The translations under genes and the position numbers were made by a program. Below, piece by piece: positions 5,688 through 63,754 of a DNA stretch of 64,000 nt; within the stretch, counting starts at the first letter, position 1; the number at the start of each line of letters is the position of its first letter. Location: IMG/VR virus record IMGVR_UViG_3300010334_000023, positions 62,001 to 126,000 of that record; one strand, 5' to 3'. The notes beneath the pieces are model-generated. The model did not search any database, was not told the origin of the DNA, and saw only the letters and a program-made list of their open reading frames with translations.

Positions 5688-7319
<1,632 letters not shown>

Positions 7320-7326
7320 TTACTCC

Positions 7327-7617
7327 TCAGTTTTCAATAACGGCAAAAAGTTCTTCTTCTTTGAGGACAAGTAGGTCTTGCCCGTCAATCTTGATCTGTG
7401 TGCCTGCATACTTGCCAAACAACACGCGATCATTCACGCTAACATCCAGCGGGATATAGTTGCCGCTATCATCCTTGGTCCCTTTGCCCACAGCAAGCAC
7501 TGTGCCCTGGTCAGGCTTCTCTGCTGCAGTGTCAGGGATGACGATGCCGCCCTTCGTGACAGTCTCGCTGTCCACGCGCTTCACTATGACCCGATTATTA
7601 AGCGGTCTCAGTTCCAT
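7327..7617 (-). CDS. groES: Co-chaperonin GroES
   Basis: [30 protein letters not shown]; AAGGAG RBS before ATG 7617. Confidence 0.97.
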
Positions 7618-7643
7618 CGTAGTCTCCTTGGTTAAATGGAAAA

Positions 7644-7670
7644 TTAGCACTCCATCAGTGGCAGTGCTAA
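7644..7670. promoter_or_regulatory. CIRCE element (HrcA operator)
   Basis: TTAGCACTC-N9-CAGTGCTAA, one mismatch to TTAGCACTC-N9-GAGTGCTAA, upstream of groES. Confidence 0.88.
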
Positions 7671-7678
7671 CACCTCAT

Positions 7679-7707
7679 AATATAGTCGGAGAATCTACTG
7701 AAAGCAA
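7679..7707 (-). promoter_or_regulatory. Sigma70-like promoter of groESL
   Basis: TTGCTT-17 nt-TATATT directly upstream of CIRCE. Confidence 0.65.
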
Positions 7708-7709
7708 GA

Positions 7710-8051
7710 GCCGGTTACGCGAGCGTCCACTCCTCCGGCGACCTTTATCGTAGGTCCGTTCACTGCCGCCTAATACCACCTGCTCACGCAGCTGGCGCTT
7801 ATCAAGCCTACGCACCCAGCGTCACGACCATGCCGTATAGTAGCGCCGTCAGGTCCCGGGACCTAGGCTGCTGTGCTGCTCCAGCATAGAAAAGCAGTCA
7901 GCCACTAGCTCGTCACCAGGCGTTACTCGATAGATGCGCTGGACGACTGGGCTCAAGGCCCGCGCTCCCGAGTTGCCAGCTGTGCGGACCCTGGGTGTTG
8001 ATCCTAGGCAGATTCCCATCAGCGGCAACTCTTCTGATGGCACACAGCTCA
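7710..8051 (-). ncRNA. Candidate large structured ncRNA, unclassified
   Basis: No credible ORF; own promoter; nested stems, 8-bp pseudoknot, long-range pairing, GNRA loop. Confidence 0.6.
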
Positions 8052-8056
8052 GCTAT

Positions 8057-8085
8057 AGTTTATGCGGCTTGGATGCTATTAGCAA
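8057..8085 (-). promoter_or_regulatory. Sigma70-like promoter of the candidate ncRNA
   Basis: TTGCTA-17 nt-TAAACT. Confidence 0.6.
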
Positions 8086-8144
8086 TACAGAGACAAAGAC
8101 GCAGCCAGTTTGGCTGCGTCATGTTTGTTTTATGCTGTTGGATA

Positions 8145-27582: not shown

Positions 27583-27617
27583 GTGCTAGTATATCACAGC
27601 TACTGGCTGCTCCATAA

Positions 27618-27908
27618 TCAAGCGTGGCCAATATGCCCATAGACTTCAATGTCAGTGAGCTTGCTCACCTCAGTGATCTGGTCCTTTATCAACCGATTTA
27701 CCAGCTTTAGATTCTGCTTTCTGCTGGCAGGATCTAACTGACCAATGATGTGTCCTAGATTCAAGCTCAGCACTGTGAGCAGGATCTCATTGGCCAGCTC
27801 TGAGCTCGTATCTGTTTCCAGCTTGCTATGCATTCCAGCTAGATAGGTGTATAGGGCCGCGCTGATATCATTCTTGAAAGAGTCAGCAATCTTATCTTGA
27901 TCAGTCAT
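27618..27908 (-). CDS. Hypothetical protein
   Basis: 96-aa ORF, TAAATA 5 nt before ATG. Confidence 0.6.
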   Translation of the reverse strand: MTDQDKIADSFKNDISAALYTYLAGMHSKLETDTSSELANEILLTVLSLNLGHIIGQLDPASRKQNLKLVNRLIKDQITEVSKLTDIEVYGHIGHA

Positions 27909-27954
27909 GACAATATTTAACGGTCAACCATGCAGGTTAGCAATGCTCATGCAA

Positions 27955-27979
27955 AGATAAACCGGGCATTTAGCCCGGT
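27955..27979 (-). terminator. Terminator after sheath gene
   Basis: ACCGGGC-5 nt-GCCCGGT followed by T-rich tail on the minus strand. Confidence 0.6.
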
Positions 27980-27987
27980 CCATCAGC

Positions 27988-47297: not shown

Positions 47298-47305
47298 CAG
47301 TTACC

Positions 47306-47605
47306 TCAAAAATTAAATGTTTTCACAGGTTGTACTGCAGAAGCATGTTCTGCTTCTAACTCACTGTGTATTTGCTCAACATTTATAACACCATATACCC
47401 AGGCTTCTACCATTTCTTCTGTAACAGAATCAAAAGGCACAAAGGTTTCCAGATTCGGCGCTCCTAGTTGAACAGTATCGTTCTTCTTATAGGTAGTACC
47501 GTCGTCAGCATATAGCACGCACCACCAATGTATCTGGCTGATAGCATCCGTAAAAACTTCATCGCTGTAAACATCAGCTGGGCCTAATTGCCAATCGTAT
47601 CTCAT
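47306..47605 (-). CDS. Small hypothetical late protein
   Basis: 99 aa; FVPFDSVTEE.V.AWV; late promoter 47632-47627; AGGAG RBS. Confidence 0.6.
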   Translation of the reverse strand: MRYDWQLGPADVYSDEVFTDAISQIHWWCVLYADDGTTYKKNDTVQLGAPNLETFVPFDSVTEEMVEAWVYGVINVEQIHSELEAEHASAVQPVKTFNF

Positions 47606-47671
47606 ATCTAGCTCCTTGACGCAGCATATTTATGGTTATATGATGAGTGATGATAGTCGAGCATGCATACA

Positions 47672-47699
47672 GAAAACCCGGGATTGCTCCCGGGTTTTC
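47672..47699 (-). terminator. Terminator after major capsid gene
   Basis: GAAAACCCGGGA-4 nt-TCCCGGGTTTTC. Confidence 0.82.
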
Positions 47700-47720
47700 C
47701 TTTCTAGTAGCTCTAATTTC

Positions 47721-58468: not shown

Positions 58469-59332
58469 ATGGTCAACAATCCACTACAGAAGCATTTTAG
58501 GAGACCAGCACTCTGGATCAAGCTGCCCACGGGTGGACGCTGGTACCAAGATGGCAGCGTCAGCATCAATGGCGAAGGCCAGGTGCGCATCTTTGGTCTA
58601 ACTGCCAAGGACGACATCATGCTCAACACGCCAGACGCGCTGTTGAACGGCCATGCGCTGGAAACGGTCATACAGAGCTGCGTGCCAGATGTCAAGAACG
58701 TCAAGGGACTCATGCAGCCAGATCTAGATTCCATCTTCCTTGGTATAAAAGCAGCCACAAACAATGGTCAGTTTGAGATCGAACGCAAGTGCGAAGCCTG
58801 TGGTCACGAAAACAACTTCGCAGTACAGTGCAACCATCTCATAGATCAGACCACGTTCGTGGAAGACAGTGACTGTGTGGTGATGATTGGCAGCGACATG
58901 CGAGTGCACATCAAACCATATAGCTATGAGATGCGCACGATTCTCATACAGAAGCAGCTGGAAGAACAGCGGACTCTCACTGCTATTGAACAGGACAATC
59001 AGATAACCGATGACATGCAGCGTGCCGGAATATTAGCACAGAGCATAGAAAAACTCACAGAGCTTACTTTCAAGCTGGTAGCCAACAGCATAGTCAAGGT
59101 TGATATCATAGCAGCAGAACCTATCACAGTGACAGATCAGCAGCACATCACAGAATGGCTGCTGAATACCGACAAGGTAACAGCAGATGCTGTGATCAAT
59201 GCTGTCAATGAGCTCAATCGCGTTGGGCCACCAAAAGAAACACCGGCACAGTGCGAGCAATGCGGACACGGTTGGACCGAGAAGCTGAGCTTTGATCCCG
59301 CGCTTTTTTTCACGCGACTATCGCCACCATGA
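58469..59332 (+). CDS. gp26: Baseplate hub / tail assembly protein (gp26-like)
   Basis: NPL..FRRP..IKLP, T.KDDI.L.TPDALLNG, two CxxC pairs, ..FDP..FF. Confidence 0.78.
   Translation: MVNNPLQKHFRRPALWIKLPTGGRWYQDGSVSINGEGQVRIFGLTAKDDIMLNTPDALLNGHALETVIQSCVPDVKNVKGLMQPDLDSIFLGIKAATNNGQFEIERKCEACGHENNFAVQCNHLIDQTTFVEDSDCVVMIGSDMRVHIKPYSYEMRTILIQKQLEEQRTLTAIEQDNQITDDMQRAGILAQSIEKLTELTFKLVANSIVKVDIIAAEPITVTDQQHITEWLLNTDKVTADAVINAVNELNRVGPPKETPAQCEQCGHGWTEKLSFDPALFFTRLSPP
59305..59311 (+). other. Candidate -1 frameshift slippery heptamer T TTT TTC
   Basis: In-frame X XXY YYZ; the -1 frame is open and in frame with ATG 59329. Confidence 0.55.
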
Positions 59333-59541
59333 ACCCTGACCTGATTGGTACCATGCTAGAAACCATGGTTAAAAATCAGGATCTCATAGAACAGGACGTG
59401 TCATCCTTGGTGTTCCACATGCAGGGTGGATTGGACTATGATGATGCTTGGCTGCTTACCACTGAGCAACGTCGCTTAATGGCCAAGATCATACAGAAAC
59501 ACTACGATGATCAGAACCCTAATAAGAAAAATCTATTGTGA
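59329..59541 (+). CDS. gp51-like baseplate assembly protein / possible frameshift extension of gp26
   Basis: 70 aa; L.FHMQGG..Y..AW.L...R; ATGA overlap, no SD. Confidence 0.6.
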   Translation: MNPDLIGTMLETMVKNQDLIEQDVSSLVFHMQGGLDYDDAWLLTTEQRRLMAKIIQKHYDDQNPNKKNLL

Positions 59542-59544
59542 TTG

Positions 59545-60040
59545 ATCCTGTGATGAGCGTAGCTCATCAGTTAGCTGAGCTAAAGCTCATCTAACACGTT
59601 TTCTTTAATAATGCTTGATTAGTTATTCTGGTCGATTAGCAGCCACATCACTCCCTTTGCCAGGGAGTGACCATGTGAAACATCATTCTGGTTCGAACGA
59701 CACCACTGCCCTTTCATCCTTGCTTGTCAGCAGCTGGCGGAGTGCCTAATTCCAGCTTGCGGATGAGATCCTCTGAGGAGTCTATACCTCAACACTCGGT
59801 TATGGGAGTTTACCCACGCTACATGATGGTCAAACGGCCAGACGCATCATGCATCACAGCTGGCCAGTCGCACGGCGGCTGTGATCCTTTTCCTGATTTC
59901 CTTGGCAGGGGCCTAGCAGATAGAAATCCCCGTTCAGTGAGTGTGATAACCTTGCCGTTATCCTTTCACTGAGTGGTAACACCACCATTATGGAGCCAAT
60001 ATGGATTAGTAGGTTACAACTGTGAGGTAACCCTGGAGCC
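59545..60040 (-). ncRNA. Candidate large structured ncRNA or structured cis-element, unclassified
   Basis: ~500 nt without a credible ORF, at least 9 stems; GCAA-capped loops favour the minus strand. Confidence 0.5.
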
Positions 60041-60044
60041 TATT

Positions 60045-60401
60045 TCACTTGCTGTGCTTGATTGCTGAGTCTATGACTTCTGCTAGCTTATGGCGTTCTT
60101 TGTTTAACATCTCTGAGCCAACGACCTTCCACAGCTGTTCAAGCTGTGAATCGGACAATTTCTTGTGATTCTCTGAGCAATGAGTGTTGAATTCTTCTCT
60201 GATGCTAAATCCTGGCTTGGCCAAGGTTCCGTAGCTGATTGGAGCTGCGCGGCGCTGCCATGGGCTGGTCTTCTTGGCCGGCGTGGTAGCAGCAGTGGCA
60301 GCCTTGGCATCTTCTGGAAACCAGTGTTTCTCAGCTGGCGTGTTTTCGACCACCTGAGACTTGCTTTTCTGCCTCTGTTTGGCAACTTTCTTGGTGACCA
60401 T
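60045..60401 (-). CDS. Basic hypothetical protein
   Basis: 118 aa, GGAGG RBS. Confidence 0.55.
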   Translation of the reverse strand: MVTKKVAKQRQKSKSQVVENTPAEKHWFPEDAKAATAATTPAKKTSPWQRRAAPISYGTLAKPGFSIREEFNTHCSENHKKLSDSQLEQLWKVVGSEMLNKERHKLAEVIDSAIKHSK

Positions 60402-60948
60402 CTGATACCTCCGTTACTGTTATAGCATTGTCATCTATGGTGTCAGCTGTCAAGTTCGATGACAGGAAATGGTCATCTGGTTGAGCCAGCCAATCATCCA
60501 GCAAATGCACGTAGAAGTCTTTGTATTTGTTGTGATACTTACCAGGAATGGCCTGTTTGAGGAACACCATGATATCCACGTTATTGTACTTGATAACGAG
60601 GCTCATCAATCGCTTGCTGGCATCTGCATCTTGCTGTGCCTGGGCAAGCCATTGATCCCATTGAGCAACGCTGTGCTTGAGCACGCTCTGGAAGCTGGGT
60701 GGTGTCTTGTAGTGCTTGCATTCCACGCTGTAGGTAAAGTTTCGAGGGCATATCAGGTCCCCGAAAATCGCATAGTCTAAGCTGTAGCTCTCAGTGCGGA
60801 TCTTGTTGCTACCACCAAAGAAGCTGCCGCTGTCTGGATTGCGGCGGAAACCGTTAGCCATGCCCAGCGCCGCTTCGAATCTAGCAGACAGCGTGTTTGC
60901 TATCTTGCGTTCAAAGCTTGAGCCTTTTGCCTTGCCATTCACTGCCAT
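60331..60948 (-). CDS. PD-(D/E)xK nuclease, Holliday-junction-resolvase-like
   Basis: KAKGSSFERKIA, GDL, VECK, W..Q. Confidence 0.72.
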   Translation of the reverse strand: MAVNGKAKGSSFERKIANTLSARFEAALGMANGFRRNPDSGSFFGGSNKIRTESYSLDYAIFGDLICPRNFTYSVECKHYKTPPSFQSVLKHSVAQWDQWLAQAQQDADASKRLMSLVIKYNNVDIMVFLKQAIPGKYHNKYKDFYVHLLDDWLAQPDDHFLSSNLTADTIDDNAITVTEVSDGHQESCQTEAEKQVSGGRKHAS

Positions 60949-62732
60949 CAGGTAATTATCTCATGTTCATAGCTGAAGGTAGTAAATCCACCTTCTTTGA
61001 TCACGCTGAGCACGTTGCTAACACGGGTTATCAGTTCTTCTCTGTGCGATATCACGAACACGTTCTTGCCACGCTCGCGTTCCATGCGCTTGAGCACAGC
61101 AACCGAGCCTTCCAGACCAGCAGGATCGAGGCCGCTATCTAACAGTTCGTCCACGAACAGCAGATTGATCGCTTGGTTCATGTTCTCAAAGATGTCACGG
61201 AAGCTCCAGCTCAATCCCAGTATCAAACGAGTGCGTTCACCACGTGATAGATTGTCAAAGTCCAGATCCTGACCCAGCAAGCTGATCTCTGTGGTGAGAT
61301 CATTGAGAAACTTGACGCTGTGAGGCAGTCCCAGCTTGTCCAGGTAGTCGTTTAACCTGCTGTTGAGATAGGCTAGGTTCTGATCAATGATGCGCTTGCG
61401 TATGAAGCTGTCCTTGTTGGTCAACAGCTTGAGCAGGAACTCTTGGTGTTCTCGAGCCTTGATCATGGTGTTCAGCTTGTCATAGCTGACTTCTTGTACC
61501 GTGCTCTGTAGGCTGTCTGCCTGATCTAGATAGGGATTCTCAGCCGCACGCTCCTTGACCAGATCTTTGTGCAGAGACTCCAGAGTGCTCTTATGGTTCA
61601 CTGCTTCGGTCAGCGTGGGATAGAAAGTCTGAGGCGTGCCCATGGCAGCATACACAGGTTCAACCTCATCTATCTGAGACTGTAGATCGGCAATTTCCTG
61701 CTTCTCGGCATTGACCTGTTGATCCAGCGTGGCAATCTTGCCTTCTAGCTCGCCGATGATGTCTTCGTGCTTGTGGTCCTTGATCTGCTGTTCGCACATT
61801 GGGCATTGCTTGTGCACGCTGGCACGTTCAAACTGGTTTAACAGGCCGTTGAGCTGTGTTTCTAGCTGTCCAGCATGCCTGCTCTTGAGGCTTTGATCCT
61901 TGCGCAGCTGTGCCAGGGCCTTGCCTAGCTCTCTGTGAGTCTCGACCAACTTGTGTTTTTCAAGCTCTGTTTCAATGTCCAACAGCTCAAGCTGTTCTAT
62001 GGCAGCTTCCAGAGTGGCCACTTCTTGCAGATGCTTGTTGTCCCAGTTGTTGATCTTGTTCTGCAGATCTTCGATGGCCTTGGCAATCTTCTCATTAGCA
62101 GTCTTCACGGTGCGTATGCGAAACTCTTCCTGATCAATCTCAGTCTTGGTGGCCTTGATCAGTTCCTTGAGATTCTCAGCCTTTTGGCTCAGCAGCGTGA
62201 TGCCCAGCAGCTCTTCGATGATCTCGCGCTGTTTGGCAGCACCCATGGCCAAGAATGGCTCTGTGTAGGTGTTTAGTGCCACGATGTGCTTGAACAGCGT
62301 GTGGCTCATGCCTATGAGCTTGACGATGTCTTTCTGGCTGTCACGCGCATCGCCCTGTGCTTCATCGGTGGCTTCTTCGCCAACCTTGCTCTCATCATCC
62401 ACCATCCAGCGGAAGAACTGCGGCTTGCGACCGCGCTCAATGCGATGCGTGTGACCATTGAGCTCGAATTCGATGCTCACGGCCATGTTCTTGCCGTTGA
62501 TCTTGTTGACGAGGTTGTCGCGCTTGATGTTGGTCAGTGCTTCACCGTACAGCCCATAGCTGATGGCTTGGAGTATGGTGCTCTTGCCCACGCCGTTGCG
62601 CGAACCATTGCCGCCCAGATCCAGATTGTCACCTAATACCAAGGTCAATCCGTTGCGATCCAAGTCCACTGCTTGCGTTACCGCACCAACAGACAAGAAG
62701 TTCTTGAGGCTCACGCTTTTCAGTTTCAACAT
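60948..62732 (-). CDS. gp46: Recombination ATPase subunit (SbcC/Rad50-like)
   Basis: KNFLSVG, NGVGKST, CPMC hook, LSRGE, VDELLD, VISH. Confidence 0.94.
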   Translation of the reverse strand: MLKLKSVSLKNFLSVGAVTQAVDLDRNGLTLVLGDNLDLGGNGSRNGVGKSTILQAISYGLYGEALTNIKRDNLVNKINGKNMAVSIEFELNGHTHRIERGRKPQFFRWMVDDESKVGEEATDEAQGDARDSQKDIVKLIGMSHTLFKHIVALNTYTEPFLAMGAAKQREIIEELLGITLLSQKAENLKELIKATKTEIDQEEFRIRTVKTANEKIAKAIEDLQNKINNWDNKHLQEVATLEAAIEQLELLDIETELEKHKLVETHRELGKALAQLRKDQSLKSRHAGQLETQLNGLLNQFERASVHKQCPMCEQQIKDHKHEDIIGELEGKIATLDQQVNAEKQEIADLQSQIDEVEPVYAAMGTPQTFYPTLTEAVNHKSTLESLHKDLVKERAAENPYLDQADSLQSTVQEVSYDKLNTMIKAREHQEFLLKLLTNKDSFIRKRIIDQNLAYLNSRLNDYLDKLGLPHSVKFLNDLTTEISLLGQDLDFDNLSRGERTRLILGLSWSFRDIFENMNQAINLLFVDELLDSGLDPAGLEGSVAVLKRMERERGKNVFVISHREELITRVSNVLSVIKEGGFTTFSYEHEIIT

Positions 62733-62734
62733 GC

Positions 62735-63754
62735 TTATATGCTCTGATAGATCTGGATCAACTGCTGCCGATCTATGGTATTGGATTCTATGCTCTGCAG
62801 ATGGCTGATCACGATGGTGTCCACGCTCTCAAAGTTGATGTCACCATCTGGTATGGCACCTTGCGCATCTGCTTTGGCCACCTGTAGGTTCACTTCGCGA
62901 GCGTTGAGTTCGCGCTCAAACAGCTCCTTAAGGAAGTTGGCTTCTTCATAGGTGATGTCCAGATCCACTGCGATGCGAGCATAGGTCTTGGCATCAATGA
63001 TAGATTCTGGATCTTCCAGCAGCGTGCTCAGAGGCGTTACGCGATATTTTGGAGCACCAGGCCAAGCACGGAACGTGGGATACTTGCCTGGTTCCCAGAG
63101 CATGATGCCTCGGTTGTCATCCCAGGCATCTGAGTAATCATGTGGGAAGCAGTTGCCAGTATACCAAACCTTGCCGCGGTTCTGTCGCTTGTGGAAATGG
63201 CCAGTGAACACCTGCGTTTGGTTAGCAAAATGCGTCTCGTTGAGCAGCCCGTGATCTGGCATCTCCACCATGGCATTCATCTTGAACTTTGGCAGTTCGA
63301 AATGTCCAAACATGTATGGCGCTTTGATCTTTGGCACAGATTTCCAATCATCGCCTACCAACCATGGTATGAAGCTTACGCCATCAAACACCTGTTGTGT
63401 CTCGATCAAGCGGATGTTCGCAAATTCCTTGATGTAAGGGATGCTGTGGATCTCGTACTTGTCCCTGTAGAACAGATCATGGTTTCCTATGAGGAAGAAC
63501 ACATTATCAAAGTAATCGTTCAGCTTTTTGAGCCCGCTCACTGAGTAGTTGAGCGTGCTTACATTGATAGCACTGCGATTGTGATGCCAATCGCCGCCGA
63601 AGATGCAGTTCTTGCTGCCCCATTCTTCGGCCTGCTCGATCATCCATTCTATGAACTGCTCACAGCTGGAGTTGTGCTCGCGGCTGTTGTTTCGCAATCC
63701 ATAGTGGATGTCGGTGAAGTACACTGTCTTTGAGAAGTCTATGTCTTTTGCCAT
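62735..63754 (-). CDS. gp47: Recombination nuclease subunit (SbcD/Mre11-like)
   Basis: DIHYG, GDW, GNHD, GHFE, GHFH. Confidence 0.93.
   Translation of the reverse strand: MAKDIDFSKTVYFTDIHYGLRNNSREHNSSCEQFIEWMIEQAEEWGSKNCIFGGDWHHNRSAINVSTLNYSVSGLKKLNDYFDNVFFLIGNHDLFYRDKYEIHSIPYIKEFANIRLIETQQVFDGVSFIPWLVGDDWKSVPKIKAPYMFGHFELPKFKMNAMVEMPDHGLLNETHFANQTQVFTGHFHKRQNRGKVWYTGNCFPHDYSDAWDDNRGIMLWEPGKYPTFRAWPGAPKYRVTPLSTLLEDPESIIDAKTYARIAVDLDITYEEANFLKELFERELNAREVNLQVAKADAQGAIPDGDINFESVDTIVISHLQSIESNTIDRQQLIQIYQSI

Follow-up and report, generated by a model that had tools for sequence, protein, structure and literature searches.

Large, intricately folded non-coding RNAs have previously been described in bacteria and their phages. 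GOLLD and ROOL RNAs, which are often phage- or prophage-borne, are several hundred nucleotides long and known from metagenomes, GOLLD having first been seen in lake metagenomes; they contain multi-way junctions, pseudoknots and highly conserved unpaired nucleotides, and their function is unknown (PMC5737381; PMC12286853), although they assemble into homo-oligomeric cages (PMC12286853). OLE and raiA RNAs are large, complex and well-conserved bacterial RNAs with suspected ribonucleoprotein or ribozyme roles (PMC9723947; PMC10861870). Where the function of such RNAs was solved, they turned out to be ribozymes, ribonucleoprotein cores or, recently, RNA-only cages (PMC12286853). Here we analysed a gap of about 500 bases in an uncultured lake phage, which we read with fair confidence as a gene for another RNA of this general kind, probably transcribed from the minus strand, with no match to a described RNA family and with an unknown function.

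The window analysed is a stretch of 64,000 nucleotides, bases 62001-126000 of a 216,498-base viral contig from a freshwater metagenome (IMGVR_UViG_3300010334_000023), rated 42% complete. Its genes are those of a T4-like jumbo phage, including a T4-type portal, a gp26-like baseplate hub (58469-59332, plus strand; identified by PF12322 and phrog_150), and, on the minus strand, a PDDEXK resolvase (60331-60948), an SbcC-like gene (60948-62732) and an SbcD-like gene (62735-63754). The nearest cultured hub proteins, from Atu_ph07 and Rak2-like jumbo phages, are only about 30% identical, and a BLAST search of the region against 50,697 cultured-phage records gave no match. The gap at 59542-60044 lies between a 70-aa plus-strand ORF (59329-59541), which follows the hub and converges on the gap, and a basic 118-aa minus-strand ORF (60045-60401). 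The latter overlaps the end of the resolvase ORF by 71 bases (60331-60401), its real start may be further downstream, and its N terminus is strongly basic. Neither small ORF had a family or atlas hit, and no partner protein could be named.

The original prediction described this gap as a densely structured non-coding region and inferred either a large ornate non-coding RNA or a structured replication origin or packaging element. The 503 bases indeed fold below all 100 dinucleotide shuffles on both strands (-169.4 kcal/mol, z -3.51 on plus; -170.4, z -3.09 on minus). Most of the predicted stems were recovered and are supported by covariation across relatives, namely 59934-40/59966-72 enclosing 59945-50/59957-62, 59853-60/59878-85, 59822-28/59845-51, 59714-19/59761-66 enclosing 59732-37/59752-57, 59648-56/59662-70, and the two hairpins at 59551-59595. 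The predicted stem 60011-17/60027-33 exists but lies outside the conserved RNA, the GATTTC/GAAATC stem is not kept in distant relatives, and the CACAT/ATGTG extension is not kept in all relatives. Another ORF-poor gap, at 7651-8144 (about 494 nt, GC about 0.55, fold z -3.61), which is probably the first structured region of the original prediction, is not conserved like the present RNA, because BLAST to a complete 518-kb relative stops at the gene edge (window 6802-7628 matched, the gap not). Two further gaps of about 400 nt, at 27590-27987 and 47298-47720, have moderate fold scores (z -2.7 and -2.3) and each ends in a strong GC-rich hairpin that looks like an ordinary terminator.

To collect relatives, we searched IMG/VR for syntenic loci through the flanking proteins, and viral and metagenome contigs through conserved motifs. 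This gave 26 distinct versions, of which 24 were used; they fall into five groups (A to E) that are 45-100% identical to the window over a 750-base stretch centred on the element, and all come from lake samples. In four relatives, the core changes at 0.139 substitutions per site against 0.381 and 0.337 in the two flanking ORFs, about 2.5 times better conservation than the protein genes beside it, and against the 518-kb relative BLAST identity is higher in the gap than in the flanking genes. No frame spans the core and 55 of 59 indels are not multiples of three, so it is not coding. The hub and a small ORF lie on one side in all five groups, the 70-aa ORF being homologous in groups A to E, and the SbcC/SbcD block lies on the other side in every group whose contig reaches that far (A, B and E). 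In contrast, the gene just upstream on the RNA's own strand differs between groups, the 118-aa ORF being conserved only in groups A and D. The RNA is single-copy in the window's record and in the complete 518,643-bp relative. A 455-kb relative lacks it; there, hub, small ORF and resolvase lie head to tail on one strand without a gap (L015:4883-6510). The recombination block is therefore inverted relative to the window's clade, and the RNA sits exactly at the junction in the clade that has it. The hub-protein match in the 455-kb relative (L119, G002:C1:120929-121786) also carries one in-frame TAG, which could mean stop-codon recoding, two genes or a broken gene. A search with the family pattern found no member in 185,579 bacterial and archaeal species genomes, the two hits there (Ferrithrix and Kitasatospora) being chance matches.

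The original prediction did not assign a strand. Plus- and minus-strand consensus folds of the 16 closer sequences share 98 pairs, in which the non-Watson-Crick cells are 29 A:C against 2 G:T as read on the plus strand, that is, 29 G-U wobbles on the minus strand. In the model-based alignments of all groups, G-U outnumbers A-C on the minus strand by 60 to 6 and 63 to 11 (123 against 17 in total), although these alignments were fitted to the minus-strand structure, which favours G-U there, and the unbiased count uses only the 16 closer sequences. Several minus-strand G-U pairs are nearly invariant. These wobble pairs put the RNA on the minus strand, in the direction of the SbcD/SbcC/resolvase block.

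Because RNAalifold on a MAFFT alignment of all 24 sequences lost most helices through misaligned variable hairpins, we built two covariance models from the 16 closer sequences (R1, 60008-59822; R2, 59821-59618) and used them to align all five groups. In the 5' half, 50 pairs are 95.2% paired and 41 show compensatory changes, with slid controls at or below 49% paired; in the 3' half, 47 pairs are 96.3% paired and 28 show compensatory changes, with slid controls at or below 56%. None of 500 shuffles reaches these values in either half. The 97 nested pairs, 69 of them with compensatory double changes, define a conserved core of about 385 nt, read from about 60004 down to about 59620, with invariant unpaired stretches of 10-25 nt. 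The 5' edge is marked by an invariant YAUA at 60003-60000, followed by a four-way junction (59999-59902) comprising the closing helix 59995-59999/59902-59906, hairpin 59972-59986, the long hairpin 59935-59971 and hairpin 59907-59931. The closing helix is 99% paired, with UUGGC/GCCAA replaced by CCGG, CCUA, CUAGC and CCAGC pairings in other groups. In place of the GATTTC/GAAATC stem, the conserved pairings are GGGG/CCCC and the first of two pseudoknots, in which the loop of hairpin 59907-59931 (59917-59919) pairs with the A-rich linker after the junction (59893-59895). Its three pairs are 100% paired, reading CG:18 GC:4 UA:1, then UA:23, then GC:19 CG:4, with slid controls at or below 44% paired, and the pseudoknot reads CUG/CAG, GUCAU/AUGAC or UUGGC/GCCAA in different groups. 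Two hairpins follow. In the hairpin at 59853-59885, which has an internal loop, all 8 pairs of 59878-59885/59853-59860 and 3 of 4 pairs of 59873-59876/59863-59866 show compensatory changes. In the hairpin 59841-59851/59822-59831, which has a conserved 9-nt loop, 9 of 10 pairs are compensatory, with up to 6 pair types at one position.

The 3' half begins with a short hairpin UGGG/CCCA (59803-59816) inside the near-invariant 30-nt stretch UAGCnUGGGUAAnCUCCCAUAACCGAGU; it is 100% paired, changing to GAGG/CCUC in three sequences. The hairpin UUGAGG/CCUCAG (59773-59792) is 99% paired with 3 compensatory pairs. A three-way junction (59715-59765) comprises the closing helix 59761-59765/59715-59719, in which CAUCC/GGAUG changes to GUCC/GGAC, GUUCC/GGAAC and GCCC/GGGC in other groups, an invariant 24-nt hairpin at 59733-59756 (GCUGGAAnUAGGnACUCCGCCAGC) and a variable hairpin at 59721-59732. 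In the second pseudoknot (59740-59797), GAGUn (59797-59793) pairs with nACUC (59744-59740) in the apical loop of the invariant hairpin. Its 5 pairs are 100% paired in 23 distinct sequences; four never vary, and the fifth reads A-U in 15, G-C in 7 and C-G in 1, without exception. A small hairpin at 59682-59701 is 100% paired with 5 compensatory pairs, and a ten-pair hairpin CACUCCC/GGGAGUG at 59647-59671 is 96% paired with 6 compensatory pairs and is also present in group B by eye. The 3' tail region (59626-59645) could form a weak hairpin 59640-59645/59629-59634, the weakest helix at 85% paired. Alternatively, 59643-59647 could pair with the 5' YAUA (60000-60004) to close the whole RNA, but this candidate helix, YAUA with UAUG/UGUG, is complementary in groups A, D and E, shows only wobble changes without a double change, is not seen in groups B and C, and remains tentative. 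The direct repeat TTCTGGT(T)CGA noted in the original prediction occurs at 59626-59635 and 59686-59696, in the tail and in the small hairpin, twice in the window against 0.18 expected and nowhere else in the 216-kb record. It reads CGA(A)CCAGAAU on the minus strand, and its two copies sit in different structural contexts. A related CAGAAU word occurs twice at matching places in the distant member L039, and AUCAAAA occurs twice in the relative L104. The 216-kb record has no excess of sites complementary to the repeat, and we rejected it as a target-pairing site. A hammerhead-like CUGAUGA at the 3' hairpin was rejected by inspection, as it sits inside a perfect stem and no GAAA follows.

Terminator-like hairpins flank the core on both sides. 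On the plus strand, two tandem hairpins (59551-59569 and 59570-59595) are followed by a T-rich run up to 59605 (ACGTTTTCTTT), which is kept in relatives, and the stems keep their pairs through compensatory changes (59574/59591 reads GC, TA and AT; 59579/59586 reads GC and TA). They are probably the intrinsic terminator of the hub operon, although a consensus scan did not list them because the T run starts 3 bases after the stem. Within group A their sequence is almost invariant, and they may also end or cap the minus-strand RNA, which would then reach 455 nt. The two hairpins share the word GCTCATC, so in the window's type they could refold into one long nested hairpin, an alternative lost in the L013 type, where the second hairpin is TTGATC/GATCAA. 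On the minus strand, the hairpin at 60011-60033 lies directly after the stop of the upstream ORF, and several relatives (for example L011, L014, L057 and L104) carry a hairpin of different sequence at that place, often followed by a U-rich run. The strongest is that of L104, a 7-pair GC-rich stem followed by UCUCUUUUUUU.

The sequence is present in lake metatranscriptomes. One of them (X7) contains 67% of the sampled words of the element and a 1077-nt contig at 59706-60782, running from the core through the 118-aa ORF into the resolvase gene, whereas two others (X21 and X22) contain only 200-nt contigs inside the core, from a 92-95% identical relative; several further RNA runs contain a few words. 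This fits transcription on the minus strand but is weak support, because the contigs have no direction, the libraries may contain DNA, and in X7 the depth over the RNA is no higher than over the neighbouring genes. The flanks of the relative in X21 and X22 would fall under the 90% cut-off, and restriction to the core therefore does not prove a discrete RNA.

We are fairly confident that the gap contains a gene for a large structured non-coding RNA, as the first inference of the original prediction had it. Because terminator-like hairpins of both neighbouring operons box it in, and its conservation does not depend on which gene lies upstream, we infer that it is an autonomous, trans-acting stable RNA, whose compact tertiary fold would be the functional entity, as the RNA part of a ribonucleoprotein, a self-assembling architectural RNA or a ribozyme. 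This trans-acting reading rests on anatomy alone, without an identified partner protein, substrate or activity. No sigma-70-type promoter lies upstream on the minus strand and no canonical terminator with a U run follows the core on that strand; the RNA would be made either by read-through of the weak upstream terminator or from an unrecognised phage promoter. It is also possible, though doubtful on present evidence, that the RNA is a new functional class and not merely a new family, such as a ribozyme or a self-assembling RNA particle specific to roughly 500-kb freshwater phages, which might even work with the phage's own assembly or recombination machinery, given its fixed place between the baseplate-hub and SbcCD/resolvase modules. 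The element offers a well-defined target of about 400 nt for structure determination and biochemical screening, a marker for that phage clade, and a test case for what large RNAs do in giant phages.

The main rival, which we consider unlikely, is a cis-acting 3' untranslated element of the SbcD/SbcC/resolvase transcript, a structured cap that protects the mRNA from 3' exonucleases and insulates the two converging operons without a role of its own. The position directly downstream of that operon on the same strand, the unbroken X7 contig and the lack of a separate promoter would fit this view. However, a protective cap needs a hairpin or two, not about 100 conserved pairs, two pseudoknots and invariant unpaired stretches better conserved than the genes it would protect; moreover, the gene just upstream differs between groups while the RNA stays, and a terminator-like hairpin separates the upstream ORF from the RNA in several relatives. 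Transcription from the plus strand, starting after the terminator of the hub operon, is very unlikely. The plus strand folds as well as the minus strand, a plus-strand alifold uses several invariant G-U pairs, and a weak sigma-70-like match lies at 59657-59686, but this putative promoter lies inside a conserved hairpin. The wobble counts favour the minus strand, and near-invariant minus-strand G-U pairs, for example GU:18 at one pair of 59873-59876/59863-59866, would be A-C mismatches on the plus strand. The long-range helices of a 5-sequence plus-strand fold (TGCC/GGCA and CATTCTGGTTCGA with GAGCCAATATG) clash with the closing helix 59995-59999/59902-59906, which covaries in all groups.

A replication origin, single-strand initiation site or packaging signal, the alternative raised by the original prediction, receives no support and appears highly improbable, despite the position between converging gene blocks next to recombination genes and the possibility of hairpins in single-stranded DNA. 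The strand-asymmetric wobbles and the pseudoknots fit RNA, the sequence occurs in RNA libraries, there are no iterons or A+T-rich unwinding block beyond a 23-nt spacer, the only repeat has two copies, and there is no skew change at the site. In the complete relative with terminal repeats, the element lies at 415.6 kb of 518.6 kb, about 103 kb from the end. A missed protein-coding gene, such as the 82-codon plus-strand ORF 59724-59972, can be practically dismissed: stop-free stretches of 70-110 codons occur on the plus strand in several relatives, but the open frames differ between relatives, the indels rarely keep frame and the substitutions in stems are compensatory. A diverged member of a known large RNA class is likewise very unlikely, even though Rfam models for some classes, notably group I introns, may have limited reach, and T4-like phages can carry group I introns and huge phages tmRNAs. 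Rfam 15 gave no hit at gathering score in the 64-kb window, only noise in 59450-60150 (E 1.7 or worse, 11-17 bits against cut-offs of 35-71), and nothing in the RNA of four other members; across six family members no hit below E = 1 lies inside the RNA, with no subgroup-specific group I model applied. ARAGORN found no tRNA or tmRNA in the window, and three minus-strand frames contain no tag-like peptide. There are no exons to join as for a group I intron, since the upstream ORF ends before the element with a C terminus homologous between groups A and D, and the downstream sequence is antisense to the 70-aa ORF. Neither the window's record nor the complete 518-kb relative has a match to the reverse transcriptase family PF00078, expected beside retron, DGR or group II intron RNAs, or to PF07282 of TnpB-type nucleases, in a search that did not include IscB. 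For Y-RNA-like (YrlA) RNAs, no PF05731 (Ro60/TROVE) match and no tRNA-like hit was found. Full-text literature searches found no description of such an RNA in jumbo phages.

Among known systems, GOLLD and ROOL are likewise several hundred nucleotides long, with multi-way junctions and pseudoknots, and carried by phages, but the present RNA does not match their Rfam models, is apparently smaller (about 385-455 nt against roughly 580 and 800 nt), and is not next to tRNA genes, none of which lie in the 64 kb. From sequence comparison alone, no conserved palindromic loop was seen, and the 8-mer GUUCGAAC is not kept in the relatives L057 and L108. OLE and raiA are chromosomal in Bacillota and relatives, and OLE has defined partner genes beside it, whereas here no conserved same-strand partner gene exists and Rfam gives no match. 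The phi29 pRNA, which appears to work as an RNA part of the phage's own machinery rather than as a regulator, is probably about 170 nt and shares no sequence or fold; a virion or assembly role for the present RNA is pure speculation, prompted only by its fixed place beside the baseplate-hub genes. The hairpins at 59551-59595 and 60011-60033 look like intrinsic terminators of the two converging operons, but they account for about 70 of the 500 bases, and the 385-nt core between them is far more elaborate and far better conserved than any terminator. A large ornate phage RNA of unknown function is already known in general, and the present RNA resembles GOLLD, ROOL, OLE and raiA in kind, but not in sequence or fold.
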